The translations under genes were made by a program, and so were the position numbers. Of a stretch of 64,000 nt of DNA, positions 20,119-62,107 are shown piece by piece. Source of the DNA: Monocercomonoides exilis PA203 (taxonomy: Eukaryota; Protista; Preaxostyla). Position 1 is the stretch's first letter; every line of letters starts with the position of its first letter. The stretch covers positions 1,736,001 to 1,800,000 of the forward strand of contig LSRY02000009.1 in NCBI GenBank assembly GCA_001643675.2. Direction: 5' to 3'. The notes below the pieces were generated by a model that had not been told where the DNA came from, made no database searches, and saw nothing but the letters and a program-made list of their open reading frames with translations.

Positions 20119-21647
20119 TCAAACATTCATAATAAAATCTGAAATATTCTTGGTTTGTCCAAAATAATGGTTTCTGTAGTGATAATAAACCATTTTATAA
20201 AAGCTGATGATGGTATCTTCGTATCCTTCTTCCTCCAACTTTTCAAACACTTTCCGTTTCAGCTCCTTTCCTTTCTTTTTTTCATATGAATAAACCATTT
20301 TTGTCAATCGCTCAAAAACATGCGAAAAAAAATTCAAGCTGCTCCACATTAGCGTTTCATCCATTGTTGGCTGCTGAATCTCCTCCAAAACTGCACCAAC
20401 CACACACACCTTCGTAAAAGCATCAATTTCGAGTTCTTCATTTTCTGATGTATTTTCCAACAAACAAATATATTTTTTGCAAATGTCTTTGTGATTTTCT
20501 CTTGATGCTCGAATTATTTTTGAAATGCTGCCAAAAAGCCAAACACATTCTTTGCAGCTCGGTCGGCAATATAAAATATAAGTTTCAATTGACGTTGTCC
20601 ATCTCCAGATAATATTCACTTCTTTTCCTCTTTCTTCTTCTTTTTTCTTCTTCCAATCCACTTTTTTTGCCAGCTCTTCTAGTTCTCTTGCCGCCTCTCT
20701 CGCAAAATTCTGCTCATTCACAACTATATCATCTAAACTTTCTTCACTTTCATAACTCTCATAACTTTCATAACTTTCATAATCCATTTCATCCATAGCA
20801 TTATCTTTTGAGCATATTTCACAGAAATATCTATTTATTAAAAACCCCCAAGCATCTTGATACGCCAGGCGTGTTAGGTTGTGATGTTCCTGATGATATT
20901 TGACAATCTCTTTGATTTCATTAAAATACAGTTCTTTTTCAATATGCTAATCAAAATACATTAGAAAAAATTACAACAACATCAAAAAGGAAATAACAAT
21001 GCTCATACACGTTCTCCAATACTGTCCAAAGAAAGTAAAGCCATTTCCACTTCTTTCTGGGTTTCCTCGTTTTCCTCTTTGTTCAACGCAACTTTCAGAA
21101 GGCAAGGAACAATAATTGAAACCGATTCAGAAGAAAGTTCATTGTTGAGTAAAGCATTGCACTCGCATATATCAACAAAAAGTTTTTCATTCTTTTTTTC
21201 TTTTTTCTCATTTTCATCAATGATCATTTTTTCATATGTTTTGCTCAACGAAGAAAAATTATATTCCTCTGTCCATAAAAGATTCACCATTTTGAAATAT
21301 CCAATATTCTTCAGCAATAAGCATGCATTTTTCATCGTCAGTTTCTCTTCTTTAATCATTTTGAGTATTTTATCAAACAGTTCTTTTGTGAAAACTGATT
21401 CAAATTCTTTTCCATTCATTTCGTCATTTATTTCATTTATTTCACGAATTTTCTGTTTTTGTTCAATTTCAGTGCAATCTTCCAGTCCATTGAACAATTC
21501 TTTAAAATTGTAAAGAAAGAAAGAAAGAAATTACCAAAAATTTAAATACAACAATAAATTCAGACCTGTGAACTTTTTTGTGTTTTCTGTATCCTGCTTT
21601 TTTGTGATCACATTGCATTCAAAAAGCAATGGTATTTTAACATTCAT
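20119..21647 (-). CDS. 'KMEEEGYED' helical-repeat family protein, copy G1 (3 exons)
   Basis: Introns 21500-21565 and 20947-21008 give an open frame. Family motifs VPCLLKVA, EVEMALL, HQEHHNLTRLAYQ, EEEGYED; carries a (YES)3 insertion. Confidence 0.85.
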
Positions 21648-21799
21648 ATAAAATTTGCATTTGTTTGGACAGAAGTAATAGATGATATATAAAACACTCA
21701 AAATAGCAATCAAACTATGTGCGGCGGCACCACTCTTCTTCTTCTTCTCATTTGCATTTTTAGAAAGTTACAAAAGCAAGAGTGAGTTTGAAATATTAA

Positions 21800-22330
21800 C
21801 TTTTGTTATAATGGATTCAATGATCAAAATGGCTTCTTTGAACTGAAGAATAAATATGCAAAATAGGTGGTCGATGAGTGAACATTTGCTACAGATTTAA
21901 TAATGTTAATTTCGACGTCCACATGTATCGCTGGAAAACAATGCCACTGATGAAATTTTGATAAATAATCTATGAAATTGGATAGTCAAGGGGAATACAC
22001 CAATTTCATCAACAACACAAAAAGACATAATGTATGTAATTTTTACAGTTCTATATGTTGTAAAGATATTTCCATCTGTATCCTTTCCAAAGTGCAGGAA
22101 TGTGAGTTATTGTTGAAAAGGCCAATCTCCACTTTATGGAGCAATACGATGAGAATGGAGCTGATTATTATATAGCAATTAGGATGTAAATGAAGTTACG
22201 TAAAATACATGATATTTGGTGCAAGAGGTGAAGACAAATTCAACTGTAATTTTATTGAATGAAGATTTATAGATGGTATTCTGCGAAGGACAAAATCTGC
22301 ACAAAATTATATAGCATTTGGGAGCATAAG
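21800..22330. repeat. Conserved upstream cassette of G1 (decayed ORF or regulatory block)
   Basis: Long near-identical match to 25910-26440; related to ~36610-36760 and ~60150-60485 in opposite orientation, as expected from gene strand. Confidence 0.75.
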
Positions 22331-22546
22331 GCAGTGAGAGCAGTTTGGATATTTCTGGAAAGGAAAGTGAATTGCAAAATGGAAAGCAGGATAAAAACAA
22401 CGAAAAAGGAAAGAAAGCAATGCAAAGAAATAAAACAAGATAGAAGCGGAATTAACAGGAGCGAGACAACTATTTCTGCTTTTGGAATATAAGCCTGCCT
22501 TTTGGAAAATTTTTATAAACTGAGAATAGTTACTCCTTATCATTTC

Positions 22547-22790
22547 ATTGAAATAGATGAAATGAATGTCATCAGCTTCTGTTTCAGCCCATGCTTTTGA
22601 AAGGATAACAAAATTTGAGAGGATTGCTTTTATCAACTTGCATTTGATGCCTTTATTGGATTTGATAAACGAGCAGACAGAAGTTTTGGAACTTTGGCAT
22701 CACAGCCCAATTTTGATGATATGAAATGGCAATGCTCTTCTGTGCTTTCTACTTCATCATCATCTTATCATCATCATCTTTTTCTTCCTC
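22547..22790 (+). repeat. Paralogous segment, inverted copy at 63765-64000
   Basis: cattgaaatagatgaaat...catcagcttctgtttcagcccatgcttttgaaaggataacaaaatttgagagg...ggaactttggcatcacagcccaattttgatgatatg is shared; both copies adjoin TCT/GAA low-complexity tracts. Confidence 0.85.
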
Positions 22791-24266
22791 TTCTTCTCAA
22801 ACACGTAATCTTTTATCTCCAATATCTTCTTCTTCCTCTTCTTCCTCCTTATCGTCTTCTTCTTCTTCTTCTTCCTCCTCTTCTTCTTCTTCTTCTCTTT
22901 CGTCTTCTCTTCCCTCATCAACTTCTTCTTCTTCTTCTTTCACTTCTCGTTCAAATCGCCCCACCAATCATCCTCCTCCTTATTCTGCTTCTTCTTCACT
23001 ACAAACCCCCAAAACAACACGTGCTTCTTCTTCATTCTCTTCTTCCTCTTCTTCCTCTTCTTCTTTTTCCTCCTCCTCTTCTTTTTCCTTTTCCTCTTCT
23101 TTTTCCTTTTCCTCTTCTTTTTCCTCTTCCTCCTCTTCTTCATCAGCCTAATCCTTCTCTTTCATTCAACTCACCATTCATTCTCCATCTTTTCTCAACC
23201 AACAGATCTTCCCTTATTCCTTCTTCATTGGCTCTTCAATACTCTTCTCTTCCTCTTCCTCTTCCTCTTCTTTCCATTTCGTTTTCGCCACTCAACTCTT
23301 TTCGCCTTCTTCTGCCTCTATTCATCGTCTGTATCCAACAGACATTTACTCATTAAACACATCACATACATCTTCTTCTTCTTCTTCTTCTTCTTTACCT
23401 TCTCCTTCTCCTTCTTCTTTATTGTCCTTGAGAGAGGATGTCTCCTATCTTTCGCTTTTCTTCTGCAATAGCATCCAGCCCTTCCCAGTACAAACGCCAT
23501 CTCCCAATGAACATTCATTCATCTCTCACACAACTCAACAGCTCCAGAAACGCCCTCTGCTTCGATAGATACAAAATTCGAGCTGTGGCTGAGTCCAATG
23601 AATCTTTCTTTGCTGTGATAAGAAAAGAAAAATAGAAAAATTGGTCTAATAAAAAGAATCAAGTGGTAATGCTTCAAATTTTCCTCGAATTTTGTTGCTA
23701 TAGGAAAAGAGCATAAAATATTCGACTCCACTTGATTCACACTTTTGCCATTATTAACTTTTTGTTTTCCATTTTTTTTATGTTCAAATCGTTAATTGTA
23801 TTAATAACAATTTTTTTTTTATTAACAAAGAATATTCTCCATTTTGTCTGCAAAAATTCACATTTTGAGCAATTTGTGGTGTGTTTTTTGAAATGAAAAA
23901 AAGAAAAAATATTTCGTTTTAATAGTAACAATAGTAAAAGAGATGAATACAAAATATAACAAAAAGAGAATTGTTAATATTATTTTATTTTAATTTTTCC
24001 AAACAAATCCAATTTTTAATTTTTTCGACAATTCAAATGATTGAAAACAGTGTATTTTCATCAGTCAGCGTAGATTGATCATTTTTCAATCACACTTCAT
24101 TTGAACTTTCTTCTCCAATTCAAGACAAAAAAACATATTCGAGCTTTGGAAAAAGGATAGCCTTCGATTTCATAACGAAAAAAAAAAGAAAGAAAAGAAA
24201 AAAGAAAAAAAAGAAAAAAGAAAAAAGAAAAATTTAGAGAAACAAAATGAAAAGAGCACCATTTCC

Positions 24267-25756
24267 TCAAATATTCGCAAAATAATCAAAAGTGTTCAAT
24301 AATGGTTCATAATAATATCCTTCGTTTTGATTAACAAATATCCCATGAGAGCTAATGAAAAAGTCTTCCAGTCCTTCTTCTTCCATCTTTTCAAATATCT
24401 TCATTTTTGTTGATTTTCTTTTCTTTTCTTCCTTTTCATCTTTCTCCTCTTTTTTCAATTTACTTGAAATATCCATAAAAAACATCAAACATTTAATCGC
24501 AATTTTGTCAAAAAATGTGCGCCTCTGAAACTCTTCCAAAACAGCATCAACAGTTCCCCCTTTCAACAGGTCTTCAGTTTTCATGGCTTCATTCTCTGCT
24601 GCCACACTTAGTATATAAATGCAATCCAATCCCACATATTTGCGATTAGCTGTTGCGGCTCGAAAGATCTGAGTGATGCTGCTGATAAGTTTGATAGATT
24701 CTTCAGTCCTCAATTGGCAATTGCGAAAATAAAGACATATGCATCGACACCACTCTGCGAAAGTATATTCTTCTATCTTTTCTTTTCCTCGTCTTTCCTC
24801 TTCTTCTTTTCTCTCCCAATCCACACATTTTGACAGCTCTTCCAGTTCTCTTGTCGCTTCTCTTGCAAAATGCAGTTCATTAACAATTAAGCTTTCCAAG
24901 CTTTTGTCGTTTTCAAATCTGTTCAAAATGCAGCCCCAAACAGACTGATATGCAAGTTGAGTCAGATTGTGATGTCTCTGATGATATTTAACAATTGTTT
25001 TGATTTCACTCAAAAATTTTTTATGCTCCACTTCCTTATCAAAGATAATAAAATAATAAAAACATTACTAAATGAACCAAAATCTAATTAATAAATCAAT
25101 CACACATCCAATTGATAAATTAGGCTCAAAGACAGCAAGGCCATTTCCACTTCTTTTTGAATTTCTATGATTTTCTTCTTGTTCAACGCAACCTTCAAAA
25201 GGCAAGGCACACATATTGATACTTCTTCCGAGTCAAGATTGTAGGAAAGCAATAGATAGCATTCGCAAAGATCAACAAGAAGATTGATATCCTTTCCTTC
25301 TTTCTTCTTATTTCCATTTATGATCATCATGGAAATTCTGTAGTGTAAAGAGGATAAATAAAATTCTTCACCTCTAATTCCTTTAAGCGTTTTGTAATAT
25401 CCCAATTGTTTCAGCAAAACGGATGCGTTCCTTGTTGAAAGTTTCTCTTCTTCAATCATTTTGTCCATTTTGTCAAACAACTCAATCGTGAAAACGGATC
25501 TGAATTCATCTTTCTTCATCACATCGAGCAATTCATTCATTTCTTCGATTTTCTGTTTCTGCACAATCACATCGCTTCTTTCCAGTTCAGAAAACAATTC
25601 TTCAAAAAGTAATAAACAAAGAAAGATATCCACTCATCATGAGCTCAAACGCAACAACAATGCGAACAAACTTGCGAACTTTTCGGTGACAGCTATCCCA
25701 CATATTTCCATAGCCATGGTGCAATCAGCAAAAATTCTCATTTTGAACATTTGCAT
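24267..25756 (-). CDS. 'KMEEEGYED' family protein, copy G2 (3 exons)
   Basis: Introns 25600-25671 and 25035-25105 are at the same positions and phases as in G1; open frame to TGA. Alternative start at 25717. Confidence 0.85.
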
Positions 25757-25909
25757 GAAAAACAAAACACAACATTACAGAAAAAATTAAAATCCACAAT
25801 AAAATCTTATTGTCAATATAAAAATTGGATCTCATACTCCATCCTTTTTATGTTATTATTTTTAACTAACAATTATCAAGAAAATCAACACTTTATCTCT
25901 TGTCTTTAT

Positions 25910-26440
25910 TTATAATGGATTCATTGATCGAATTGTTTTCTTTGAAATTGAATATTCATGCACCGATTGAGAAATCCGTGAGTGAACATTACCTTTAGAA
26001 CTAGAAATATTATTTTTTGTGGAGATAACAGGCAATGGTGGAGATGCATCGATTATGAAATACATTCTGATAATTATTAGAGATTGGATGAACAAGGGGA
26101 AATGCAACAATTCCATCAATTACACAAAAAGACATAATGAATGTATTTTGTATCGTTCAATTGATTGTGAAGATATTTCCGTCTGTATCCTTTCCAAAGT
26201 GCAGGAATATGAGTTATTGTTGAAATGGCCAATCTCCGCTTTGGAGAGCAATACGATGTAAATGGAGCTGATTATTATATAGCAATTAGGATATAAATGA
26301 AGTTACGTAAAATACATGATATTTGGTGCAAGAGGTGAAGACAAATTCAACTGTAATTTTATTGAATGAAGATTTATAGATGGTATTCTGTGAAAAAGTG
26401 GACTAATAAAAATTATATAGAATTTAGGAATATAAGGCAA
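25910..26440. repeat. Conserved upstream cassette of G2
   Basis: Direct duplicate of 21800-22330 at an offset of ~4.1 kb, the same offset as G1 to G2. Confidence 0.8.
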
Positions 26441-27599: not shown

Positions 27600-29089
27600 G
27601 AGATGTGTTTAATTCTTTCTCATAACAAATTTTCTTTCTTTTTCCCTTTCCTCCTCCACCCTCATTGAAATCATATTCATCTGAGTCAATCATTTCTTCA
27701 CAATAAATCCCTCACATTCTTCGTTCTTCTCCTTCAAACCTTATTGGTTAACATCCAATTTAACATACAGATCTTAACTTGTCAGCTCATCTTTTTCAGT
27801 CAAAACGAAGCAGTTTGTAAAGCGATCCAAAATGACTGACATCATCCAACAAACCCCACAACACCTGCAATGACATGCGCTTTTGCTATCATCTGAATTA
27901 AACAACTTTCTTTCCTTATTAAATATAATGTTAAGTTCCCACAATCAACATTGACAACTTCCTCTAAAACACACGCAATTGTTCTGGTTGATGGAACGGC
28001 TGCACTATCACAAATCTGCGCACTGCTGAAGTCCAATTCTCCTCTTCTCTTGAAATCTTCTGTTGGATGCCATCGGATGGAGAAGAACTGCACACTTCTG
28101 GTTCTACTGAATGCTGCTTGTCTGAATCCGCCTCAGCCTCTGCCTTCACAAACCTCAGCCGACCCAGCCCAAGTGCCTCCACAACCAGCGGCGCCATTGC
28201 TTCTTCCAGCTTCCCCTGGTTCTCTTTGATTCTCTCCACAAACTCTCTGTGCGCTGTCGGATACACGCCTTTCTCCTCGTTCCCATCACCTCCCTCTCTC
28301 CCTCCATCTTCTTCTCCCTTTTCTTCTCCCTCTTTGTCTCCCTCTTTGCATCCCTTTTCTCCTTCCTCCACCTCTTCCCGCTCCTCCAGCACCGCCAGCA
28401 CAATCTTCTCAGGCAACAAAATCACATCCCCCATCCTAATTCCGACAGCCTCCGGACCCTTTCCCACAATCTCCCCCACTTCACGCGCTGCAACCCCTCA
28501 CGCCATCATTTCGTCCTCCAGCTTCACCACAACACGCCTAGACTGCTTTGATCGCAACTCCAGCTGCGTCATTATTGATGGCAGCACAGACAAATCAAAC
28601 AGATCAATGAATGGTAAAAATGCATTTACATCAGTTGCTGTTAAATATTCGCTTGCTCCCCGTCTTCGTTCCCTTTAACGCTGTTTGTGAAGAAAGCAGC
28701 TGAAACAGCTGAACTGAAAGCATAGCCAAAAGTGCAACAATGCAAACTCACGCACAACATCCCCATACAACACAACCAGCTGTGTGACGCCATATCCCTC
28801 GAAGCATCTGCAGCGCCCGCGGAAACAGCAGCGGCAGCAGCAGCTACAATCTGCATGTGCTGCATATACACCCCACCTACCTCAGACACCACAATCAGCA
28901 GCCGCCTCTCGATGTCTTCTATTTCTACTGCAGATCTGCATGCTGCTCCAGTTGAAAAAAAAGAAGACGGCAAAAAAGAAGAAGTCTGTGATGTTGATAA
29001 AAATGGAAACGATTGTGGCTGTTCATCTCCAGCTGGTACTTATCTTCGCATCCTGACTGGAGAAGCAGACCAGTGGGCTGTTTCAGTTA

Positions 29090-29122
<33 letters not shown>

Positions 29123-29897
29123 ATGATGAGATGGAAGAAGGAGGAGGAGAAGGAGGAGAAGGAGGAGGAGAAGGAGGAGAAGGAGGAGGAGGAGGAGAAG
29201 GAGAAAGAATGGAAGATTATGACAGAACTGGTTGTGAAGAGGAAGAAAGTTATGTAACTGTTCTAACTGCTCCGTCGGCTTCAGCTTCTTCCTCAAATAA
29301 CATGAGTTTAAATACAAATCAGATGGAAGATTCTGCAGGTTCTGTATCATCCCTTTCTTTTCAGCCTTCTTCTTCTTCTTCACCTTCTTCTTCCTCCTCG
29401 ACAAATTCAACTTCATTTCTGCCTTTCTTCTTCCTCTTCCACTTCTTGTTTGCTTTTCAAAGATTCTCACTCCTGAAACAAACAAAAAAACACGCTACAA
29501 ACAGCGCTTGGCGTTCGATCTGAATTTAAAAGCGAAACTTCAGATGCACAGCTGATGGCTGAGCTGAAGGAGAAATTGATGTCTTTTGTGTATTCTGCAG
29601 ACATTCTCTTTGAAAGTGCTGAAGACAAGCTGTATGGAAATGTCCGCCTTGTGCCTAAGGTGACGACAACTTTCACAAATTCGATTATCTGTACATGAAG
29701 AAAGTGGATATGGAAGGAGAAAAAGATGATAATGAAGAAGGAGAAGGCGAAAAAGAAGAAGAAGAAGAAGTGGAAGGAGAAGGAGAAGGAGAAGGAGAAG
29801 GAGAAGGAGAAGGAGAAGGAGAAGGAGAAGGAGAAGGAGAAGGAGAAGGAGAAGGAGAAGGAGAAGGAGAAGGAGAAGGAGAAGAAAATAGAATGCA

Positions 29898-29929
<32 letters not shown>

Positions 29930-31400
29930 AATTTGAAAAAGGAAAAGAAATGCATTTTTCTGTGCATATAAATGTTGTTTGGTTGAGAGAAATTTGCATA
30001 TACATTTTGCTAATCTTTCTCTTTCTCTTTTCCATTTTCCCCTCTCTTTTTCACAACTTTCCTCATCTCCATTCATTTTTTTTCCCCTTCTTTCTTCACC
30101 TTTATCAGTTCAATCTTTTCTCTCCATCTCTCTTTTCTCTGTTTAATTCTGTTCCTCTTCGTTCTAATCGTCTGCTTGCAACATAACTTCTTTCTCTTTT
30201 TCCTTCATCTTTTATGTTTCTTCTTCTGACATCCTCAAAATCCTGCTCGTAAATATTCGAGAACCACATCCAGAGAAATATCTCTCTTCGCTTGATTTTC
30301 TCCGCTTTTGTTTAATCTTTCTGTTTCTTTTCCTTTTCATGATCATTTTCATTATTCCCCCTTTTAAATTCCCCAATTCCGTTTGTCTTTTAGGGCGTTT
30401 GCCGGAATAATTATTTCAAATTTTTTCTTCATCTTTTCTTAAATCCATCATCTGAAATTTCTTCTTCTTCTCTTTTGGCTTATTTTTCATCTTCGCTTCA
30501 TGAAAAGCGGAGCAATCTTCAAAAGAAACAGTTCTTTCTCTTCTTTCTCTCTTTCTCTCTTTCGCTTTCTCTCTCTTTCTCCAAAAAAATCTGGCAAAGT
30601 TTTTTCTCTTCACTTTCTTTCCTCAGAATGTCGAATATCTTATCTTCTTTCATGTCATTCATTTGAAAATATCCAATTCTTCTTTCAAAAATAGCTTATT
30701 TCCTCTTTCTCTCCTTTTCCTTCTCCTTTGCTTCTTTTGCTGAAATTCTCAAAACCCCACTTGTTTTTATTTTTGTACCACATCCAGAGAATTATAAATG
30801 CTGCAGAAATATTTCCCTTCGTTAAATTGTCCCCGATTTCATTTTATCTTTCTGCTTCTTTTTCTTCTCTTTCACTCAATTCATTTTTCTCTCTGGAGAT
30901 TCCCCTTTTCAGAACATCTTTTTGGTATTTTGAAGATAAAATTTATCCAAACGTTTTCTTCATCTTATCTCAAAGTGAATATTTTGGTGCAATACTTTTC
31001 TCTTCTTTCTCTGTATCTTTTCTTCTTTTCTTCTTTTCCTCTATGTCATTCCGTTTTCTTCTTTCCAACTTCTTCTTTCTTTCTCTTTCTCTATTTCTCT
31101 TTCTCTTTCTTTCTCCAGAATTGTTCGGTTCTCCCTCTTTCTTCTTTAATTGTTATTCTTTCCTCCATTACCACTCAAAGCAACTTTTCTTTTCCACAAT
31201 CACTGTTTTCCTTATTTTCCAGTCAATTGCTGCATCTTCTCTCCTTTTTCTCTTCTCCTTTTGGAAATCCTCCAATTTTTGATTCCAATTCAAAGTTTCT
31301 GGAATCCATTTCACATTTTATTCATCCGATTCTGCTAATTGCATCAAAATTGCGAGTCTTGTCATCAAATCTTCCAGTTGCATGTTTCCATCAAACAGTT
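27600..31400. pseudogene. Decayed coding-like region with GC-richer fragments and low-complexity tracts; product unknown
   Basis: Broken ORFs (27964-28479 minus, 28732-29523 plus) interleaved with GAA/GGA repeats; no recognisable domain. Confidence 0.3.
29773..29882. repeat. (GAAGGA)n microsatellite followed by a (GAT)n run
   Basis: Directly visible; it produces the spurious poly-EG/SP/L ORFs. Confidence 0.9.
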
Positions 31401-32800
31401 TTCTGAAATGACAAAGAGTTATGACAAATAACAAAAAAAAGTTGGATGCTTTTTGAATGTGAATGCCCAGCCAGCCCATCTGCTCCGACAAAAGAGTCGC
31501 TTCTTCCAAATACCCTCAACAAATGAGCCAAATAAATTGCTTTTTCTCTCTTTCAAGCTCATGTTAAGCATTGTCTTGTTGTGCGGCATGCAAAACAGAT
31601 GGCAAAAGAAACGAATATCATCATTGAATGCAATCCAAACAGGGATAATCCCAAAACTTATGGTTCTTTCGCGAAATGAAAAGAAGGCTTTTCTTTCTAT
31701 GGCATTCCTGTTCATGACCAATCTGTATTCATTCAAAGAACACCTTTAAAGAAAAATGAATGAAATAAAAAAATCAAACCATTTTTTTGGCCTCGAAATA
31801 TTTTCCCTTCTCCAATGGATTGGTAATTATCAACCCAGCCGTCTTTCTTGTTCTCCAAAAATGCCTCTCTCCTCCACAAAAAAATAGACAACTGGACAAT
31901 AAATGGCTGATACAGAACGTCTTTGAAAGCAGAGAGTTAATTGTGAAGTTGGTAATGATATCAGATGAAAACACATATTCTCCAAATTAACACCTTTACA
32001 AAGAACAATTCAACACCATGTCTTTAATGATAGATTTCCTGCAGGCTTCGTTCAAAAGGCAAACGCGATAGTTGTAAAGGCCTGCTGAGTGCTTCGTTCT
32101 GTTCGCTTCCTCCATTGTCCAACCCCTCAATTCCCTTTCCTTTTCCACAAAATCAACCTCCTAATAAAAAAATCACTGAAAACAAGTCCTGCGCAAAAGA
32201 TACGCCAAGGATACAACATTTCCCTCGAAATGAACAAGCGGTGCAATTCAATCTTTCTGAAATTCAACTCGCTTTTTCTGCATCTTGCTTAAGTTATTCC
32301 TCATCAAAATATTGCATCCTATATTGTACCATATGTTTTGCAATTTATTTATAAGTCTAAATATATGCAATTTCCCCCCGCAAATTTCTTTTTCGCAAGC
32401 AATCGATGCAAACAGCCACTCGCTCCTTCATCTGCAAGCAAAATCCATGCTCTTCTGCAATGCTATAACTCGCATGGATGCATTCGTGGACTTGTGCCCA
32501 ATCACTCAAACATGCTCTGGCTGTCGCAAATTCACTAATAAAAATTCTTCACTAATAAAATTATAGGTTCATCTCCCTTATTTATTTGCACAAAAGCAAG
32601 ATAATTTTGTTTCATTGATTTGCTTGCTTTGAGGCAAAATCAATGATGGCAAAAGATGTTTGGAATCCTTTTTTATTTGATATTTGATTTGGTGGTTTTT
32701 TAATTCTTTTGATTCTATTGCACCACAAATATTTCGAAAATGAATTTATTTACTGTTTTGAAATAATTTTTCGATTTCACAGTCACCTTCAAAAATACAA

Positions 32801-34203
32801 ATGTTTATAGGTTTGCAAAATGTTATAGGAAATCGTTGATTGAAAAAATAAATGCTTCTTTTTTCTCTTTTGATTTTTTCACTTTTTTTAGAGAAACTTT
32901 CACGGCTGGAACAATTCGCTGAAGCAGAACAGAAACAGAAAATTCTTGAAATGAATGAAATGGTTAATGAAATGGATAGAGAAGGATTTGAGTCAGTTTT
33001 CACAAAAGAACTGTTCAATGAAATAAACATAATGATTAAAAAAGAGAAAATTTCAATGGAAAATGTAATTCTGTTGTTGAAACACATTGGATATTTGCAA
33101 ACCTCGAGAAGAATGTTTATTTATGGCTTTGAAGAATCTTCGTTGAGGTATAGATTTGAAAAGATGATTATTGATGAAAAAGAGAAAAAAGAAGGAAAAA
33201 ATGAAAAGCTTCTTGTTGATCTTTGCGAATGCTTATTTTTGCTTGCAGGCATGTTTTCTTCGGAATTGTTTTCAATCTGTGTTCCCTGCCTGTTGAAATT
33301 TGCCTTGAAGAAAGATGAAGAGGAGGAAATTATAAAAGAAGTAGAAGTGGCTTTACTGGCTTTGAGCAACATTGTATTTGGCGTATGTTTATTTCTATTT
33401 CATTTTTGAAGTTATTGATTTTTTCCGATTTTTATTAGGAAGGGACAAAAGAACTGTATTTGAATGAAATCAAAGAGATTATTTTGCATCACCAGGAGCA
33501 TCAAAATCTGACACGACTTGCCTATCAGTCCGCTTGGGATTTTTTGATTTTCAGATTGGACAATGATGAAAGCTTGAATGAAGTGATTGCGAATGAACTG
33601 CATTTTGGAAGAGAGTCAACAAAAGAACTGGAAGTGCTAACAAGAAATGTGGATTGGAAGAAGAAAGAAGAAGAAATGAGCAAAGAAGAAGCGAATGAAG
33701 TGCTTTTAATCACGGGATGGATGAAAACAATAAAGTCCTATTTTGACTCATGCAAATTGTGGAATGAAGAATATGTTGAGCTGATAGGAAGCGTTGTTCA
33801 GATATATCGAACAGCGAAGGATAATTACGAAGAAATTAGATACTGGTGCGTTTTTTCCTTGAGAAATGCCGCAGGTAACGGATTTGTACCAGTTGATGAA
33901 TTGCTGAAAAGTGGAGCTGTCGATTGCGTTTTGGAGGATATTCGGAAGCCAAGATTGAATCACGAAATAACATACCATAGCTTGACATTTTTTGAGAATA
34001 TTTCAAGGCGGTTGAAGAGGGAAAAGTTAGAAAAAATGGAAGAAGCGAAAAGAAAAGAGTTGAAAAGGAAGGTGCTTGAAAAGATAGAAGAAGAAGGATA
34101 CGAGGATATCATCACAAGTTTTCATGGAACTTTTTGTTTGCTGAGCAGAAAACACTATCCTCTTTTGTCGTTGGATGTTTCAGTTTATTTTGTGAATGTT
34201 TAG
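32801..34203 (+). CDS. 'KMEEEGYED' family protein, copy G3 (3 exons)
   Basis: Introns 32811-32891 and 33383-33438; open frame ending YFVNV-TAG. Exon 1 is very short, so the start is uncertain. Confidence 0.82.
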
Positions 34204-34765
34204 CCAAATTCTTTTCATTTGGCTTTGTTTCTCTAATTTTCAATTTATCTTTTTTTTTTCATTATTTCACATATGCTAAAGATTATTCAAAATGAAAAGC
34301 TTTTATTCAAATAATAAATTTTGCCAACATAATTTTGTTATCAAACAAATAAATAAATGCAAAAATCAAATTCTCCTTTACGGATGGGTATTTATTCAGC
34401 ACTTAAATGTTCTTTGTGAATGAGCGAACGATTGAAAGAAATTTTATTTTTGTTGCAAAAATCACGATTATATTGAAATATTTTTATTTAGAAAGAAAAA
34501 AAAATAAATATGAATGCAAACGTTCTCATATTCAATTATTTTTGGTGTAATTGAAAAATAAATGTTATAAGAAGCCATCTTAAAAATCAGAATATGAGGA
34601 GGAGAAAGAAGAAGAGGAAGAAGAAGATGAAGAAGAAGAAAACAAAGAAATGAAAAAGAACTGAAGAGAAAGAGGAAAATGAAGAGCGAGAAGAAGGAAA
34701 TTTCGGAGAAATAGATGAAGATATCTGAGAAATAGAAGAAGAAGACGAAGAAGAAGACAAACAGG

Positions 34766-47800: not shown

Positions 47801-49592
47801 GGTGAAAGACAATTCTTCTCTTTGGATTTTGAATGATGGATGCACACTTGATGGAATTGCTGGAGAAAGATTATCTCCTTTCTTCATTCCCAGACTGGAA
47901 GATGTTTCTGTGAATGAAAATGAAAGCAACATTTTTATCCAATTCAAGGGATATTTTTTCATGCCATGTGACTTGTCATTCAGACTTGTGTATAAAACAG
48001 GGGATGTGGAGTTGGTTGAGACTTATCACTTTGAGGAAGACAGTTTCATATCAGAAACTGAGGTGATTGGAATTATTCCATCAGAGAATATTTCAACAAC
48101 TGGAGACGAAACAGAGGTATCAGTGATGATTTTGTTTGGAAAGCAATTGGCTGCGACTTCTCCACAGATTCTGAAGAACAAAACAGAACCAAAGCCTGGA
48201 AATGATAAAGTGGTGGAAGGAGGAAAAGAAGAAAAATCTTATTGGTTACAAATTGTAATTATTATGGCATTTATTCTTCTTATCATTTTGATAATTGCAG
48301 TTATTTCAACAGTCAGATGGAGAAAGGCAAAGAATGAGGCAAAGGATTTGAGAGAGATTGTGAATGACAACATCAAAAAGGATCCGAAGGCATTCGAGAT
48401 GGTGACGATGGAGATGTCTCCCGAGGAGCAGTGGAGGAGGGCAGAGAGGGAGGCTGAGAAGAAGAATGAAGAAAGGATCAAGAAAATGGTGTATGCAAAA
48501 AGTTTGGGACATTCAGAATCATCGGAGCATCTTCTTTCTGAGAGTGGATCAACAGAATACATTTTGGGGAAAGACTCAGACAAAATCCCTCAATGGGCTC
48601 TGGAGAAAGTTGAAGAAGAGGAAATAAGAAAGCAGACTCCATCGCCATCAATTTCTTCGACATGTTCAACTGATTCAGATTCAACATTTGTTCGATCGGA
48701 GAGTCTGTGCCCCACAACCTCATCGATGTCGAATCTTGTCGATGCAATGGCCTGCTCATCGCCTCACGAGAAGCTGATTGTGGACTTGAGGGATTCGCTG
48801 TTCATGCTGCTGCATGGAAGGAATGAGAAGAAAGAGATGGCGATAGGCACTCTTCAGCAAAGAGAGCAAACAGCTTCCCAGATTCTGTTTTGGGTGGCTA
48901 ATCTCTCACTCCACTCGTTTGATGAAATGGAAAACCCTCTTTCTTCTCTTGCCAATCTGAGTCCTCACATTGTACTATTCTCCGAACACATGGTGATCTG
49001 CATTGTGATGCATTCAGACGTTTTGTTAGATGATGATTCAGACTCATCTTCCATCTCGTCATCAACTGTTGTGACTTCTGTCAGTGGCAATTATGATGAA
49101 GAAGACTCTCTTCCCTCATCAGCATTTGAGGATGAAGATAGTTTCAAAAAAGAGTGCCTGAGGTGGAAGGCACCCGAGCTGCAGGTGAACAAGAAGAGGG
49201 AAGCGACGAAGGAATCTGTTTCATTCTCGATCGGAATGATGCTGTGGGAGTGTCTGACTCTTCAGATTCCGTTTGGTGATTATGAGGCAGAAGTGGCAGG
49301 ACAGAAGATAGTGAATGGAGAAAGGCATGATTGTAAAGCCATCAAAGGCAGTTCACTCTGTGGATTGATAGAAAGGAGCGGAAAACAGTCAGCAGAGGAG
49401 AGACCCGGGCTGAACGAGCTGAAGCGGGAGTTTATCCAGCACTTTCCAGCTGGTTCATTGATGCTCACCGTTTCTGATGCAATTGGGGTTTATTCTATCC
49501 ATGATGGGGATCTCAGGATCAATGAAAGAGGAAGGTCAGGAAGCGAATCATATTCAACAACAAGCATCCATTTTATCACTGATTCTCGTTGA
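41817..49592 (+). CDS. Very large single-pass receptor-like protein: Cys-rich beta-helix (pectin-lyase/Pmp-like) ectodomain, TM helix, C-terminal kinase-like (pseudokinase) lobe
   Basis: 2518 aa ORF plus an in-frame signal peptide MRMLLLLFACLIVV at 41817. The TAA at 41934 could be removed by a 51 nt GT-AG intron (41911-41961). Repeated GGA(I/L)Y motifs and four D..CG....PC modules; TM YWLQIVIIMAFILLIILIIAVI; RWKAPEL, FSIGMMLWECLT..IPF, ERP. Confidence 0.85.
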
Positions 49593-51899: not shown

Positions 51900-52835
51900 T
51901 ATTCAGATAGAAATATATCAATTTGAAAATTTTTAGTTGCTAACTCCAAACAATCAAATTTATTTATGTTTGTTTAAACTTAACAAAAAAAGAAAACATC
52001 TTTGCTTTTTTGAAGAAATTGGTGATTAAATATGATACAGAATATTCAAAAAATCCAGATATGATCGGTTTTGCAGTATCAACAACAGAAGAAATTCATA
52101 TTATTTTTTGTGAAATATGTCAAAAATTTTTTAGAAAAGATCCTTATGTTTAATTTTCAAACAAAGAAAATATTACATATTCTGATTATATTTCTGTTGT
52201 CACTCACAAAACCACAAACAAATCAACATATAAACGTTGAAAAGAATTTATTTTCATGATATCGAAATTTGGTCAGTGCGAACAGATAATAAATAATAAT
52301 ATGAAAATTTTTCTTTATTAGTAAATAAATCAAATGGAACTTTTCAAAAAATATAGACAAATATATTTTAAAAAGTCTGAATAGCATAATAAAAAACAAA
52401 AATTTGTTGTTTCTATTGAAAATTGCGTTTTAATAAAGAATTTTCAAAATTAAAAATATGACACAAATTTTTTTTAAATTTATTTATTAATTTTTTTTCT
52501 ATGTTAAGTCACATCGAATACAATCATAATTGGATATAGTCACGAAAAGTTGTGCAAAACCCGATGTGATAATATCCGGTTTTGACTGTTATATTAAAAG
52601 TTGTAAATCTGTTTAAAACAAGTATGCATATCACATATACAAAAATAAAAATTGGTTCAATGTGCTCAATTCTGCAAATTGCATTTTCCTGCTTTTTTTA
52701 TTTTCAATAAAATACAACGCTCTGAATATTCGGTGCAAAACATGGACTTTCAGGTATTTTTTGAACTATTCTTAAAATCAAAATTTCTATCATAACTTCA
52801 TGAGACTCACTGCAAATATGTATTAATTGATTTTA

Positions 52836-53232
52836 CAGATATCGCATAAAATACAGGACATCGCACAATATACCGGACAAGATCCATTTCACAATAACTG
52901 TAAGAAGAAAAATTCTGACTATTTTCCTCAAAACACACCTTGTCAATACAAACTCATTTGATAAACGAGACTTTCAAAACGGCTTTATTTGCGCTCAGAA
53001 AAAAATTTTTATCAAAATCTCGGAGAAACTCAAAAACCTATTTCTCCGAAAATACAAAAATAATTTATTCTGAGAACAAAAGAGGCTATTAAAAAAGTTT
53101 TGAATATCAAATGAGTTTGTACTGATGAGATATATTTTGAGGAAAATTGTCAGAATAACTTCTCTTACAGTTATTGTGAAATCGTTCTTGTCCGGTATTT
53201 TGTGCGATGTCCGGTATTTAATGCGATATCTG
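52836..53232. mobile_element. Hairpin MITE (Tc1/mariner-pogo-like), copy 2
   Basis: TA|CAGATATCGCATAAAATAC...GTATTTAATGCGATATCTG|TA, 397 bp, collinear with 15225-15602. Confidence 0.92.
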
Positions 53233-53699
53233 TATACATTAGAAAACAGTCATCATTGAAATTATAACATTAAGTTATGTGAATTCACACTCGTTTCAAA
53301 AAATGATCATATTCAAATTGGTTTTTTTATTTTATTTTTTTTATTTTTTTTTTTATTTTTTATTTTTTATTTTTATTTTTAATTTTTTATTTTTTTTCAT
53401 TTCTTTCTTTTCTTTTTTAAACGAATGAACATAAAATGATTTGTCAGTTAGATGATCTCGATTAATATTTTCCTGAAATTCATGACAAATTGTTTTTGGC
53501 CTTCATGTTGAATAAACAGACACAGATCATACCCATTTACCAAATATTGTTCTAATTGATTCAATAAAAAAAATTAAAGTTGTATCTTTATTTCATAATT
53601 CTACAAACGCAATTAGCTGTAATTGATCATTCAGAAAGTGTTTTTTCGAATTTTCCTTTTAATCAATACAATTCTTTCAACTGTGGCAAGTGAGGAAAG

Positions 53700-55222: not shown

Positions 55223-58200
55223 ATGTTTTGGAGGATAATTCTTTTCCAAATTTTGGTGTCGACTTACGTACAAGAAGAGTAATCTGAATCAATAACAACA
55301 GTTTATGTGAAGCAAAGTGGGAAAGATGAAAAAAGCGGCTTGGAGATCGAACAGGAAAAGCCGTCATTGAACGATGCTTATTTTCAGCTAACCAACGATA
55401 GAGCGTGCCACATGAAGATTGTTAATGACGATAACCCATTGACTGCAGAAGCGATTACTTTTATCAAAGAATTTGGAATTACAATTGAAGGATGGAATAG
55501 TGAGGAAAATGGAAACACTGAAGTGGCAATAGACTGTGACGTTAATCCTAGAAGTGATCTATTCAAGTGTGAATGCACAGTGGAATTCAAATACTTGGCA
55601 TTTCATTTTCCAACATCATTGGAAAAAGAGAATCAAGATTATTCAATTTACTCATTAATCAAAGGTGATAAGGCATCGTTGTCCATAAGCAACTGCAGAT
55701 TTGTTCGACCAGAAGCAGAGTATTTAAATGTTAATTATGGTCTTGTGAATACATTTGGGGGTTCTTTAACAATGGACTTGGTTGAATGCGCAAATAATAA
55801 TTATGCATTCAGATTTGAGAAAGAAATGCTTTGCGCATATGGACCTCAAACAGTAATATTATCTAATTCGACTTTTATGAAAATTGAGACAAGTAAAGTT
55901 CCCATTATCACTATTTCAAGTGAAGGGAAATGTGATACAGAATTGAACGGATGCATGTTTTTTAAATGCAAAGTAGATACTCGTGGAACATTATATTTAG
56001 ATTCTCTAAATGAGGAAAGCACATTCTCTATTGGGGATGAAGCTCTCACGACTTTTTCATCATGTTATTGCAGTGATTATCATGGTTCTGGAGGAATATA
56101 TCTGATTATCCGAAATATGGAATCAGCAAATCAGCTTAACTGGCCCGAAGACGGAAGGAATCTAAGGTTTGAAAATTGTACAGCAGGAGAAGGCGAGTTA
56201 AATAGGAACATTGGAATATATTTGGAGATGGAGAATGACTCATTTTTTGAAGAAATTGCATTTGCAATGAAAAACAGTTTTGCGATTAATTATACAATAG
56301 CAGAGCACATGTGGTATATTACTGGATATGACTCTTTAAATTCAGAAGAGATCGATTTTGTATCCAAATTTTTTGATCAATTACTGCCTCCACCACAAAA
56401 ATTTTCAAGGATTTATGCGAAGTCTGGAGGTACAGGGAATGGTGAAAGCTTGGAGAATCCAATCGGGGTTCTGAATGAGAGCAATATTAATTTAGAACAG
56501 AATACGGAGTGTTTCATTGAAATTATCGCTACAAACAGTTCTGTTTTGGGGGAAGAAGCAATGTTTAACTCTAGCTATGGCATAACGATTGAAGGAGTGA
56601 GCAGCGATGGAAGTAGCAATGCGGAAGCGATTATCAATTGTAATGCTGGTCCACCGTCTGCTCTGTTCACATGCGTTGGAGAGGTGGAATTCAAGTATTT
56701 GGTGTTCAACATTTCCTCAGAGTTTGAGCGGGATGCTTTGATTAAATCAATTGAAAGATCAACATTACTTACTGTGAGCAATTGCCGATTTGTTGGAGTT
56801 GGATCGCAGTCATCAAAAGGAAGTGACTTATGTCGTTATGGCGCTGAATATATTACAGGTAGACTTGTGAGAGTTTCTGATGGAAAAGCTTCAATGAACA
56901 ATGTTTCATTCACAATTCATGCAGATTGTGCTTCACTTTACCCATCACCATTTCATTTTGAAGGAGTCAGTGAAGTTTCATTGAATGGAGTAAATGTGAG
57001 CAACGTAAAGATTATGAATAATGCCACATTTTTGTTTGAAGATTCAGAAGACAAAGCAACGAAAATTATTGTTGAGGGAATGAATGCTCAAAATGTGATT
57101 ACAACGTTCGGAGAAGCTGCAAGGTTTGCGATGTATTTGCGCTCAGAAGAATCGACAGTGTCGATTGGAAGGCAGAGCAGGTGCACATTCAAATCTTGCC
57201 TATCGACGGGAAAAGCAGGGGCAATATACATTCGGATGGAAAAGATAAAGCCAAATCTTCAGCTTCCTTCAGCAGGCAATTTGGATATTGACAGCTCAAA
57301 CAAGGTTGGTACGATGCCAAAACCTGCTTCCTTATTCATCGAAAGCGAAGGCATCGATGAATTCTGCAAACAAGAAAATGTGTTTCAGTTTGCGGATGCT
57401 TTCGAAGGATCGACAGCTGGATGGATAATGGGAAGAAAAAATGATCAATCCAATTATGAGGATTTGTATGAGAAGTATTTGAAGTGGAAGGAAGAAGGGC
57501 CAAAGGGAGATGATCCGAAGGAAGATGATCCGAAGGAAGATGATCCGAAGGATAAAGAGGATAAAGGAGGAAATGGAGGAAATGAAGGAAATGGAGAAGA
57601 AGAGAAGCCATTTGCTTGGTGGATTATTGTGATTGTTGTTGGAGTTGTGGCAGTTGTGGCAGTTGCTTGCGTCATTTTGATTGTGATGAAGAAGAAGAGG
57701 AGCTCAAAGAACAGGATTAATGTTGAGGATGAGGAGAACGAATCAGAAGGAAAAGGAGGAAAAGGAGGAAGAAACAAGAAACGAACAAAGCGAGGCGGTG
57801 AATTGGAAGAAGGGAGGCCAGCGAAGAACTTTGTGGTTGATGCTGATTCAGATGGAAGCAGCAGGAAAACTGATGATAGCGACGATGGTGATAATACTAC
57901 TGGAACATTAGAGGCAGAGCATGAAACAGAAGAAGAAGACAGAACAAAAAAAAATGCTGAGAAAGAAGCGGATTCGAAGGGAAATGAAAATGCATCGGTC
58001 AGACAGCATTTGGACAATGTCAAACAAAACATCAATGAAACTTTTGAGCAATTTGAACAAAAAGAGCAAAAGGAAAAAAATGGCAGTGCACTTATTACAA
58101 AAGCAGTCAGTCATGTTTTGTCTTCAACTTCTTCTTCTTCCTCTTTTTCTTCAGTTTTGAATGAAGGATTGCAAACAAAGGAATTGGCTGCGAATATCAA

Positions 58201-58246
58201 AGGATTAATTGCAGAAACAAATGTTATGTCGCCTTTGTCTGAATAA
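55223..58246 (+). CDS. Single-pass surface protein with two related Cys-containing ectodomain modules, TM helix and charged cytoplasmic tail; in-frame TAA at codon 20
   Basis: MFWRIILFQILVSTYVQEE*SESITTVYVKQSG is in frame with the 979 aa ORF. Duplicated module (YVKQSG..SG / YAKSGG.G.G; GITIEG; VEFKYL; SNCRFV), DDPKE repeats, TM WWIIVIVVGVVAVVAVACVILIV. Confidence 0.75.
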
Positions 58247-59641
58247 CCAAAGGGGAATATATTAAAATGGCCGAGGAAGATGTCAAAGAGAATGCCTTCA
58301 AAGAAGAAGAAGAAAGAAAGAAAGAAAAAGAAGGAAAAAAGAAGTATTTGAAGAGTATAAATGAGTTTAAACTGAAATACATATGATTTTAATTATTATT
58401 ATCGTATCGCTTTTATTATTTGCTCATATTTTTCTTTTTTCCTTCTATTTTTAAATTTTTTATTTTTATTTTTATTCAAAACCTGAATTGCATTCTCTTT
58501 GATTATTTTCCAGCTTTCAAAAGAAATCTTTAACTTTTTAAATTTATTTAATTATAAATCTGAATTTATTTTTATTTTTTTCTTATCTTATCTTATTTAT
58601 TTTATGATTTTCTCATTGAAATATCAATTGATATTTTTTGAGAAGCTCTTCATTGCATTTGCGATGTAACAAGTTTTTTGCTAACATTTCTTTAACTTCT
58701 TATTTTTCTTTATCTTGTTCTTCTTCTCTTTCTTCATTAAATGACTGATTTGTTACAAAATGCTACAACTTTTTTGAAAGTTGTAAGTATTTTTTTCTTG
58801 TTTCTTTGGTTTGAAATTGCATTTTTCTTCTCTTTTTGAAATTAAAAAAACACTTTTTTATTTTCTCTCTCTTTTTTTTTATGAAATGGCTTTTGTAATT
58901 AAACTTCTGTGTCACTTATCTCATCTCATCTCAACTCATTCATTCGTCCATTCATTCGATTTGATGTTCATTTTTTAAAATGACTCTAACTTTACAAAAC
59001 AATTTTATTTATTACGATTGGAAATAACAAAAGATATTTTCCCACTTTTTTCGTTCAAATTCATTCAACAAAAAAAATACTTTTTTTGAATGATTTGTGA
59101 AGCAATTTTCAAAAAGAAATTTAGAAAATTGAGATGATAATTTTATTTTTCATTATTCTCGTCAAATAATAATAGACTTTGCTTTTATTTCATAGTTATT
59201 CTCTTTCTCTCTTTCTCTTTCTCTCTTTCTCTCTTTCTCTCTTTTAAGTTTCTTTGTTGATGTTCTTTGAATCACTTTTTAAAGAAAAACAATTCATATT
59301 TAAATTGATTTTTATTTTCATTTTTTAATTTTATTGTTTCCAATAGTGAAAAAAAATGTAAAAGAATTAAAACAAAAAGAGTAAGATTGTTTTCCCTAAT
59401 GAAAAACATTATTTTAATTATAAAAATTTCGAAATTAACAAACAATATTCCCTGCTTTCTCCTTATTCTCCCTTAAAAATTGATCATTTTTCTAATTCCA
59501 CTTTTCGTTTAATTGGCTCCTTTTGAATGAAGTCTGTTGCTTTCACCATAGAAATTGCATTTCTGCTCTTCCATTGAAAAGTATTTTTTATTGCTTCTTC
59601 CATCTTGTTTTTCATATTCATCCACACATTCCTCATCTCTT

Positions 59642-59672
<31 letters not shown>

Positions 59673-59699
59673 CGTTCTTCATGCATTCGTCGCACATCC

Positions 59700-59870
59700 A
59701 GCCACAACAACAACAACAACAACAAGACAAACAGGAAGAAGAGGAAGAAGAAGAAGAAGAAGAGGAAGAGGAAGAAGGTGAAGGTGAAGGTGAAGGTGAA
59801 GGAGAAGGAGAAGGAGGAAAGGAAGAGGAAGAAGATGATGATGATAAAAACGATAATGATAATGATCAAG
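59700..59870. repeat. Compound (CAA)/(GAA)/(GAAGGT)/(GAT) microsatellite in a decayed acidic coding relic
   Basis: Directly visible. Confidence 0.8.
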
Positions 59871-60693
59871 AATTAAAAAATACATATAATTTCATTTGTC
59901 GAGGAGGTGCATATGAAAACAATGATAGCTTATACGAAGGTGATGAAGAAGAAGATGAAGATCTTATCGAGATGTCACATGTTGGATATATTCTATCAGA
60001 AGATATTCTCAACATCATAACCTCATTCTCTGCTCCAGCAAGCCAAGCTTTGACGATATAGCCCAAAGACGAGGGTAAAGTGTCTTTTTATAAATTCTTT
60101 TCATCTCCAATCGCAGTGAAAATTTCGGGTCCGTTCTCATCGTCTTGCTCTCCAGAGAGGAGATTTGTCATTTCAACAATAATTCGGATTCCTGGGCTTT
60201 GGAAAGGATACAGATGGAAATATCTTCACATTATATAGATAAATACAAAATACACACATGCTGATATTTTCATTCAAAATTAAATTGTTGCATTTCGTTT
60301 GTCTTCCGATTTCCAAAAATAAACAGAATGAATTTCCTCGTTCGCAATGTTTTTCCAGTGATTGATGTTAGCATGTGAAATAATACAATTAATTCTGCAG
60401 GAATAATTCATTCGCTGATCTCTCATCTTTCCAATGGATAATCTCGTTCAAAGAAAACCAATTGATCATTGAATCCATAACAAATAAATAAAAATCGAAA
60501 AAGCGTTGCATTTCTTTAAAATCCTTGGCCGGAATGTCAACAAAAGAAAAAACAGTATGAGCACGCATATTTTATTTGATTGTTTTGTGTTTTTATTTTT
60601 CATCTGCTTATTCTATTCGATCATATTCGAATTCAATGTGAATGGCTGAAATATTACTGCTTTCTTGAACAAATTGTTTTTAAAAAGAAAAAA

Positions 60694-62107
60694 ATGCAGG
60701 AGACAGACAACACAAAAATGTTCAATAGTTTGCAATTGTTATTGCAAGTGAATTTTTGCTTATTGCATTTTTTCTTTGTTTTTTATTGAAGAATTGTTAG
60801 ACGAGCTTGGAGATTGCAATGAGGAAGATCAAAAACAGAAAATCTCTGAAATGACGGGGATAATTGATGGAATGAATGAGGAAGAAATTAAATCCATTTT
60901 AACAGAAGAACTGTTCGACAAAATTCTTAAAATGACAGATGAAAAGAAATTGAGTTTTGGAAATGCCATTATGTTGTTAAAACACATTGGATATTGCATC
61001 AAGATGAAAAGAATTTTCATTCGAAGCTTTGAGAAATCTTCATTGAACAAAAAAATTGAAGAGATAATTATTAATGAAAATGAGAAAAAGGAAGGAATGG
61101 ATGAAAAGCTTCTTGCTGATCTTTGCGAATGCTATCTTTTGCTAACCTGCTGGCATCCATATGGATTTATATCGACAATCTGCATTCTATGCCTTCTGAA
61201 AGTTGCATCGAACAAAGAGGAAAGCGATGAAGTTAAGCATGAAGTTGAAATGGCGTTGCTGGCTTTGAGCAATAGTGGGTATTACGTATGAACATTTCAA
61301 TATCATTTTTGTTTTTTTGTTTTGCTTTGCTTTTATTAGGAAGTGCCAAAAGAACTGCATTTGAATGAAATCAAAGAGATTATTTTGCATCACCAGGAGC
61401 ATCAAAATCTGACACGACTTGCCTATCAGCGTGCTTGGGAGTTTATGATAATAAGACTTTATTGGGACAATAGCCTGAAAGAAGTGATTGTGAATGAACT
61501 GCATTTTGGAAGAGAGTCAACAAAAGAACTGGAAGAGTTGATGAAATGTGTGGATTGGAATAAGAATTTTAAGGAAATGAGCAAAGAAGAAGCGAATGAA
61601 GTGCTTTTAATCACGGGATGGATGAAAACAATAAAGTTATATTTTGACTTATGCGGATTAAGGAATGAAGAATTTGTTGGACTTATTGGCAGCATTGTTC
61701 AGGTGTTACGAGCATCAAGGTGCAATAATGGAGAAATTTACGTTGAATGCATTCATTCCATAAGTAAAGCAGCAATAAATAGAGCTGTGAAAGTTGATGA
61801 CTTATTGAAAGGAGGAGCAATCAATGCTATTTTGGAGGAGATTCATCGATCAACACTGGATGACGAAATAGCAATTGAATGCTTGCGATTCTTTATAGAT
61901 ATATCAAGAAGACTAAAAGATAAGGAGAAAGATGAAAAAGAAGATGCGAAAAGAAAGAAAACCAAAAGGAAAGTGTTTGAGTGGATGGAAGAAGAAGGAT
62001 ACGAAGATTGCGTTGAGAGTTTTCAAAAAATTTTGCATATTTTGAAATACTCTTTATGGGGAGAAGATTTATCGTTGATTATTTCTGATTATTTTGTGAA
62101 TATTTGA
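60694..62107 (+). CDS. 'KMEEEGYED' family protein, copy G5 (3 exons, mosaic)
   Basis: Introns 60728-60791 and 61286-61339; open frame ending YFVNI-TGA. Confidence 0.87.

Follow-up and report, generated by a model that had tools for sequence, protein, structure and literature searches.

Armadillo (ARM) proteins, among them importin-alpha, beta-catenin/plakophilin, SPAG6/PF16, ARMC8, plant PUB-ARM proteins and the designed armadillo-repeat proteins (ArmRPs), are right-handed solenoids built from short three-helix repeats (H1-H2-H3) of ~40 residues that stack into a superhelix; in the peptide-binding members of the importin-alpha type, the groove is lined by a conserved Asn/Trp ladder on the H3 helices. 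Five genes, here called G1 to G5, in a 64,000-nucleotide stretch of the Monocercomonoides exilis PA203 genome (contig LSRY02000009.1, positions 1,736,001 to 1,800,000 of the forward strand; the whole of this stretch is the window) encode proteins predicted to form a solenoid of the same kind over ~430 residues. M. exilis is a gut protist and a model eukaryote without mitochondria, and ~60% of its genes are 'hypothetical'. By our reading, the family motifs KEVEMALLALSNI and LLKGGAxDAVLEE resemble the ARM H3 and H1-H2 consensus, respectively. Unlike the known ARM families, however, the M. exilis family has no Pfam Arm or HEAT match above threshold and no sequence relative in the PDB, carries many strongly conserved polar motifs that have no counterpart in those families, and is present in ~900 copies in, so far, a single species.

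Other gut-dwelling metamonads also harbour very large repeat-protein families. The ankyrin 'protein 21.1' family of Giardia and the BspA-like leucine-rich repeat (LRR) family of Trichomonas are fast-diverging and mostly hypothetical, and the M. exilis family resembles them in size and pace of divergence. It differs from them in being built of ARM rather than ankyrin (ANK) or LRR repeats, in its apparently cytosolic location and in its uniform length of ~440 aa.

Two further groups offer functional comparisons. F-box and MATH-BTB adaptors of plants and nematodes form families of hundreds of paralogues that grow by local duplication and combine a conserved part, which docks a common partner, with a variable part. 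By analogy, the M. exilis family may work like such expanded substrate adaptors. However, Pfam detected no F-box, BTB, U-box or other ligase-docking domain in it, and positive selection, which is well documented in the substrate-binding domain of F-box and MATH-BTB proteins, is weak or equivocal here. Solenoid immune repertoires, such as plant and animal LRR-NLRs, fungal NLRs with hypervariable ANK, TPR or WD repeats, and lamprey VLRs, likewise share with the family a high copy number, variable exposed residues and the exchange of segments. In contrast to these, the ARM family has no nucleotide-binding, TIR, death-fold or other signalling domain, no secretion signal or membrane anchor and no variation in repeat number, and its ratio of non-synonymous to synonymous change (dN/dS, or omega) is not clearly above 1.

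Family size and distribution

G1 to G5 are a small sample of a ~900-copy, so far undescribed family. The reading favoured here, with a probability of roughly 0.7, is that they are functional members of a lineage-restricted family of ~900 loci encoding soluble, ~440-aa armadillo-type alpha-solenoids, which would serve as cytosolic interaction modules.

The size of the family was estimated from searches of the 82.3-Mb genome (101 contigs). A search with the C-terminal exon returned 1971 first-look candidates; all 150 of the matches that were scored had E<1e-72, and 139 of those best 150 were stop-free. Back-translated, the EEEGYED motif matched the genome 745 times compared with four for a reversed control, and NELHFxRE matched it 555 times compared with none. 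Among 103 copies fetched as matches to G5, these motifs were present in 85 and 65, respectively, so that both patterns extrapolate to 880-900 loci. Reading frames are largely preserved: 94 of the 103 contained no stop in their aligned parts, meaning that about nine in ten sampled copies keep their frames open. Median pairwise identity among paralogues is 50%.

The family is larger than the 332 tyrosine-kinase-like genes that have been called the largest family of M. exilis (PMC6759080). All 120 of the protein relatives listed were M. exilis entries of the type 'uncharacterized protein MONOS_...', and a profile search of 1.84 billion representatives gave 334 clusters at 50% identity, with 51 matches weaker than 1e-30. 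Scanning JGI metagenomes with the family profile produced 599 pattern matches, none of which was confirmed. As far as these sequence searches reach, the family is provisionally restricted to M. exilis, and no description of it was found in the M. exilis genome papers and the literature searched.

At ~900 loci and ~1.3 Mb of genes, the family therefore explains part of the hypothetical genes and of the unclassified repeat of this genome. The latter amounts to 35% of the genome and has been suspected to consist of expanded gene families (PMC8767320); repeat content of this extent would also suit selfish DNA.

A separate observation concerns the public model P0200 (884 aa), the one long fusion encountered, in which a family member is joined to a calcineurin-like phosphoesterase/NadN-type nucleotidase. 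This fusion probably represents two neighbouring genes merged by annotation.

Gene structure and sequence

Six-frame open reading frames (ORFs) and a tblastn search with a full-length relative located five family loci in the window and no further fragments. Read from the DNA at the exon borders, all five have a common three-exon layout, predicted products of 421-466 aa and no internal stop in any exon. This bears out a preliminary description of the window, made from its sequence alone, which had proposed five intact paralogues with two intron positions and phases in common.

On the minus strand lie G1 (20119-21647; exons 21647-21566, 21499-21009 and 20946-20119; 466 aa) and G2 (24267-25717; exons 25717-25672, 25599-25106 and 25034-24267; 435 aa). 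The plus strand carries G3 (32801-34203; exons 32801-32810, 32892-33382 and 33439-34203; 421 aa), G4 (36964-38384; exons 36964-37000, 37066-37562 and 37623-38384; 431 aa) and G5 (60694-62107; exons 60694-60727, 60792-61285 and 61340-62107; 431 aa). All are intact. The public model of G3 (MONOS_6165, P0002) is N-terminally truncated, and that of G5 (MONOS_6160, P0001) is truncated and differs at its 3' end.

Exon 1 is short (10-82 nt) and terminates one base into a codon, while exons 2 and 3 span 491-497 nt and 762-828 nt. Both introns occupy homologous positions in all five genes. Intron 1 (phase 1, 64-81 nt) ends in ..(G/A)AAG or ..TTTAG. Except in G1, which has GTCTGA, its donor is the unusual GTTTG(C/T) (e.g. 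60728-60791 and 37001-37065); aGTTTG is the donor consensus of this intron over the 103 family copies. Intron 2 (phase 0, 54-71 nt) has GTATG, GTTTGG or GTGTGA as donor and (T/G)ATTAG or GATAAG as acceptor.

The conserved motifs given in the preliminary description were read correctly, apart from minor departures: NELHF is replaced by NEQNF in G1, G2 reads EEEGLED in place of EEEGYED, and G4 has LCEL in the LCEC region. The variable strings that it reported after GY and after CE(C/L) are also accurate. G1 is the most divergent of the five, and its HQEH..LAYQ motif is followed by an inserted (YES)n tract of 20 aa. No hydrophobic N-terminus or signal peptide was found in G1 to G5, and no 19-residue stretch qualifies as a membrane span, the buried LCEC..PCLL helices aside, in agreement with the soluble proteins originally envisaged.

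Two groups of conserved residues in the family alignment could be candidate metal-binding clusters. One consists of a CxC (LCEC) and a CxxC (CVPC) on adjacent helices (residues 133-155 of the paralogue P0005), and the other of HQEH and NELH on two further helices (residues 204-241). The second variable loop of the preliminary description falls between the two cysteine pairs, LCEC and CVPC.

Predicted fold

For structure prediction and searches, a full-length database paralogue, P0005 (MONOS_9622, 441 aa), was used as a stand-in for the window genes. An AlphaFold2 model built with a 46-sequence family alignment is all-helical, with 22 helices, a predicted local distance difference test (pLDDT) score of 83.6 and a predicted template modelling score (pTM) of 0.83. 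When this model was compared with the PDB by Foldseek, designed armadillo-repeat proteins came first (probability 1.00, E ~1e-5, template modelling (TM) scores of 0.4-0.6). VIA, a structure search independent of Foldseek, returned ARM/HEAT solenoids at Z 13-18 over 300-370 residues, including designed ArmRPs, axonemal ARM proteins, importins, catenins, ARMC8 and SmgGDS. Neighbours of the model in the ESM Atlas are also ARM families (TM 0.5-0.58). The model and these matches therefore uphold, as a prediction, the ARM/HEAT-like solenoid suggested earlier, and an armadillo/HEAT-type alpha-solenoid is supported as the family fold.

Duplication and exchange of segments

Fetched copies are often 77-90% identical in nucleotide sequence through the whole 2.25 kb compared, flanks included. 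Within the window, a block containing G3 (28511-34591, plus strand) has counterparts of 84-89% identity at three further positions along this contig, of which one is broken by a 5.6-kb insertion. A block containing G2 (23379-26394, minus strand) is 93% identical, in inverted orientation, to C91:1800260-1803759, where an inverted G2 duplicate (93-94% identical) lies just past the end of the window. Duplicated blocks range from 3 to >5 kb, and their ends differ between copies.

Copies are also mosaic. Divergence between close pairs shifts sharply between neighbouring segments; in one pair, the flanks differ by 1.4% and synonymous sites by 16%. Trees of the N- and C-terminal parts disagree at 12 of 20 and 12 of 23 well-supported splits; the C-part splits that conflict with the 12 N-part ones are themselves well supported. 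The nearest relatives of the two parts of G5 differ, so G5 is itself a mosaic. Taken together, these observations show that new copies are produced by segmental duplication of variously sized blocks, and that the copies trade segments through recombination or gene conversion.

G1, G2 and G5 are each preceded, at a distance of 300-700 bp, by a non-coding repeat (21955-22333 on the minus strand for G1; 26064-26439, 87%, for G2; 60130-60336 for G5), which also occurs at the 5' edge of 17 of ~100 fetched copies. Flanks that are duplicated with the genes, and a repeat that precedes about one-sixth of copies, would be at home in selfish DNA. However, the blocks differ in size and ends, and an inverted-repeat search of the window copies found only A/T-rich low-complexity pairs around G1 to G5, with no terminal inverted repeats flanking them.

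Selection along the protein

Selection was assessed on the 94 stop-free copies in two parts (P0005 residues 25-180 and 192-441), using an own grid implementation of codon models with fixed FastTree branch proportions. Model M0 gave omega values of 0.43 and 0.55 for the two halves, and NG86 dN/dS in close pairs ranged from 0.36 to 0.69. Parsimony counting (SLAC-like) found 194 of 404 codons to be significantly constrained, while others evolve close to neutrality, meaning that the rate variation noticed along the protein is genuine. Purifying selection on the scaffold is clear, with an overall omega of ~0.45 (0.43-0.55).

The preliminary description had gone further, proposing that one face of the solenoid diversifies. 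The three patches it named show dN/dS of 0.72, 0.57 and 0.74 in 32 independent sister pairs (pooled 0.67, interval 0.55-0.81), and the loop after GY is equal in length in 103 of 103 copies. In a two-rate model, the loops of that description (residues 90-107 and 140-145) reach the upper limit of the grid for the synonymous as well as the non-synonymous rate and so are fast, with omega ~1. These patches are relaxed in constraint, not diversifying.

A site-wise dN/dS test, which had been proposed as a check, returned a divided answer. Parsimony counting, here judged too conservative, found no codon with a significant non-synonymous excess after correction. In contrast, site mixtures on trees placed 15% (N-terminal part) and 23% (C-terminal part) of codons at omega>1, with twice the log-likelihood difference (2dlnL) at 294 and 790 under constant dS and 69 and 220 under a variable synonymous rate. 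Because recombination is real in this family, a tree-free pair design, half-versus-half replication and null simulations were added. In the simulations, 2dlnL did not exceed 7 when recombination was absent and was 10-90 when two conflicting trees were used; recombination thus inflates the test, yet as simulated it stays below the observed values. The tree-free likelihood on 40 independent pairs retained the signal (2dlnL 121 and 292; 24 and 79 when dS was allowed to vary).

Sites at which the non-synonymous rate (beta) exceeds the synonymous rate (alpha) lie on helices 212-228, 273-291, 318-333 and 362-380 and in the C-terminal tail, with the helical spacing i/i+3/i+4/i+7. They replicate across pair halves, with beta at 1.2-1.45 against alpha at 0.55-0.7 (2dlnL 31 and 14). 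About 20 replicated sites vary widely in side-chain chemistry, with many Tyr, Phe, Trp and His residues. Around one-third of the replicated sites are buried V/I/L/A positions, which are most simply explained by a low synonymous rate. In the held-out half, sites picked out under constant dS have alpha and beta both at ~1.5-1.8, and so are neutral and fast. Counting in the 32 sister pairs with two-fold cross-validation put dN/dS at 0.42 over all sites. Slow sites, chosen by a low omega in the training set, had a held-out value of 0.16, and flagged sites had 0.8-1.2, with intervals mostly spanning 1. On the helix faces, the ratio of beta to alpha estimated by held-out likelihood is ~2, but beta itself is only 1.2-1.45, and the recombination demonstrated here inflates such tests. 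The evidence that ~20 helix-face sites are neutral to weakly positive (omega ~1.1-1.5) is suggestive, not decisive; the effect is small, and recombination confounds it. What survives of the diversifying face is a modest signal in helix stripes other than the patches first named.

These results bear most directly on the possibility that the family is a diversified intracellular recognition repertoire, in which the C-terminal helix stripes form a groove under diversifying selection and gene conversion among the ~900 copies reshuffles the variants, yielding many binding specificities for variable or foreign targets. Several observations speak for such a repertoire: many diverged paralogues, genuine mosaicism, an omega>1 class that exceeds the null simulations and persists without trees, and replicated sites that are helically periodic, diverse and aromatic-rich. 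Set against this are the small size of the effect, with held-out dN/dS of 0.8-1.2 and intervals that span 1 in most cuts, the equally raised synonymous rate of the sites flagged under constant dS, the buried third of the replicated sites, the named patches at values below 1, and the lack of an effector or signalling domain by Pfam. Real gene conversion was probably also more intense than that simulated. Such a repertoire is unlikely, and the same holds for its more specific cytosolic version, in which ~20 exposed, aromatic-rich positions on successive long helices of the C-terminal half would make up one groove, under weak diversifying selection and reshuffled by gene conversion. If true, it would mean that a single-celled gut protist keeps a large intracellular recognition set, for example of substrate adaptors aimed at variable or foreign proteins.

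The stronger claim of an immune-like repertoire found no support. Pfam found no signalling or effector domain beside the solenoid in the window exons and full-length paralogues, there is no secretion signal, positive selection is not clear, and nothing ties the family to non-self; the present evidence reveals no new kind of immune system.

Possible roles

Under the favoured reading of functional, armadillo-type interaction modules, the proteins would act in the cytosol, bringing other proteins together as adaptors or scaffolds rather than as an immune system. The conserved charged and polar scaffold motifs (QKQKIEEMNE, HQEHxNLTxLAYQSAW, NELHFxREAxRELEEL and EEEGYED) would present surfaces that bind a partner common to the whole family, while partners specific to each copy would be contacted through the stripes of variable, aromatic-rich residues that run along the long C-terminal helices. 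By helix order and periodicity, these stripes probably correspond to the H3 groove of ARM repeats. The ARM-type fold, with its conserved polar scaffold and its variable helix faces, offers a concrete point of departure for pull-downs and localisation. The family also provides a clean natural data set for studying how a huge group of paralogues is shaped by gene conversion together with relaxed or weakly diversifying selection.

Several observations weigh against this reading. At the sequence level, Pfam gave nothing above threshold for all ten large exons and the full-length paralogues. The best match, to Arm_2 (PF04826), came from G2 exon 3 only (17.7 bits against a cutoff of 20.4, E=0.0027), and the other nine exons and P0005 had no relevant match, including to Arm (PF00514). 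A sequence-profile search of the PDB likewise found no relative. The adaptor mechanism is drawn from the predicted fold and the pattern of conservation, and the placement of the variable stripes in an H3 groove comes from helix order and periodicity rather than from coordinates. The 103 copies were chosen as the ~100 matches closest to G5 and are thus a biased rather than a random sample of the family. Likelihood site models favour a class with omega>1, and some diversifying selection may therefore exist.

Evidence of expression is also thin. RNA data came from Logan contigs of four metatranscriptome runs of one study, in which contigs match exactly to G3 exon 3 (33586-34003) and G4 exon 2 (37072-37527). 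The contigs are short, none of them crosses an intron, intergenic DNA is covered as well, and carry-over of DNA is possible. Transcription of G3 and G4 is plausible. The deepest contig cover in the stretch examined falls elsewhere, at 35610-36313, an intergenic segment between G3 and G4 and upstream of the latter. It has no long ORF and may be a non-coding transcript.

A structural role is another improbable alternative to the cytosolic interaction modules favoured here. In this case, the ARM proteins would decorate the microtubular cytoskeleton (axostyle, preaxostyle and flagella), as Giardia 'protein 21.1' does, and other metamonads have large solenoid families associated with the cytoskeleton. 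Axonemal ARM proteins of the central-pair C1 and doublet-microtubule structures 7n6g, 9cpc, 9fqr, 9e5c and 8glv are among the best natural matches to the P0005 model (Z 16-18), and SPAG6-type clusters occur among its ESM Atlas neighbours. However, ARM solenoids of any function score alike, with importins, catenins and E3 scaffolds at Z 13-17, and neither Pfam nor the PDB profile search revealed sequence-level kinship to axonemal proteins.

Least probable is that the copies are selfish or passively amplified DNA, either transposon cargo (e.g. of a transposase-less hAT element) or plain repeats of no service to the cell. The repeat content, the co-duplicated flanks and the upstream repeat already mentioned speak for it, but a cargo origin does not fit the five intact, constrained genes of the window. 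In the family, omega is 0.4-0.5, with a third of sites at 0.16, and ~90% of sampled frames are open at a synonymous divergence of 0.3-0.5; at such a divergence, by estimate rather than computation, a neutral 1.3-kb frame should have acquired several stops.

Other features of the window

The statement that most other sequence in this region has decayed was too strong. An open 2518-aa ORF on the plus strand (42036-49592) encodes a receptor-like kinase with a long repetitive part of GGxIY-type repeats, probably extracellular, and one membrane span. Its C-terminus matches PF07714 over the kinase C-lobe only (E=1e-6). The ORF is a member of the expanded tyrosine-kinase-like family described for the M. 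exilis genome and may be a pseudokinase. At 55307-58246 lies a related ORF of 979 aa, which also has a membrane span.

Mobile-element remains are also present. A DIRS-like retroelement remnant occupies about 2960-6700 on the minus strand. It includes a reverse transcriptase that is spread over two frames and thus frameshifted, along with an RNase H-like part, a match to Dam-like methyltransferases and a tyrosine-recombinase (phage-integrase-like) ORF.

Two further repeats were noted. One, of ~390 bp and unrelated to the ARM genes, occurs at 15219-15611 and 52833-53240 (79-83% identical); it aligns with itself in direct as well as inverted orientation, which makes it palindromic. The other is an inverted 390-bp repeat at 22546-22938 and 63612-64000 (85.5%), which overlaps Ser/Leu/Pro-rich low-complexity ORFs and adjoins long (GAA/TTC)n-type tracts.

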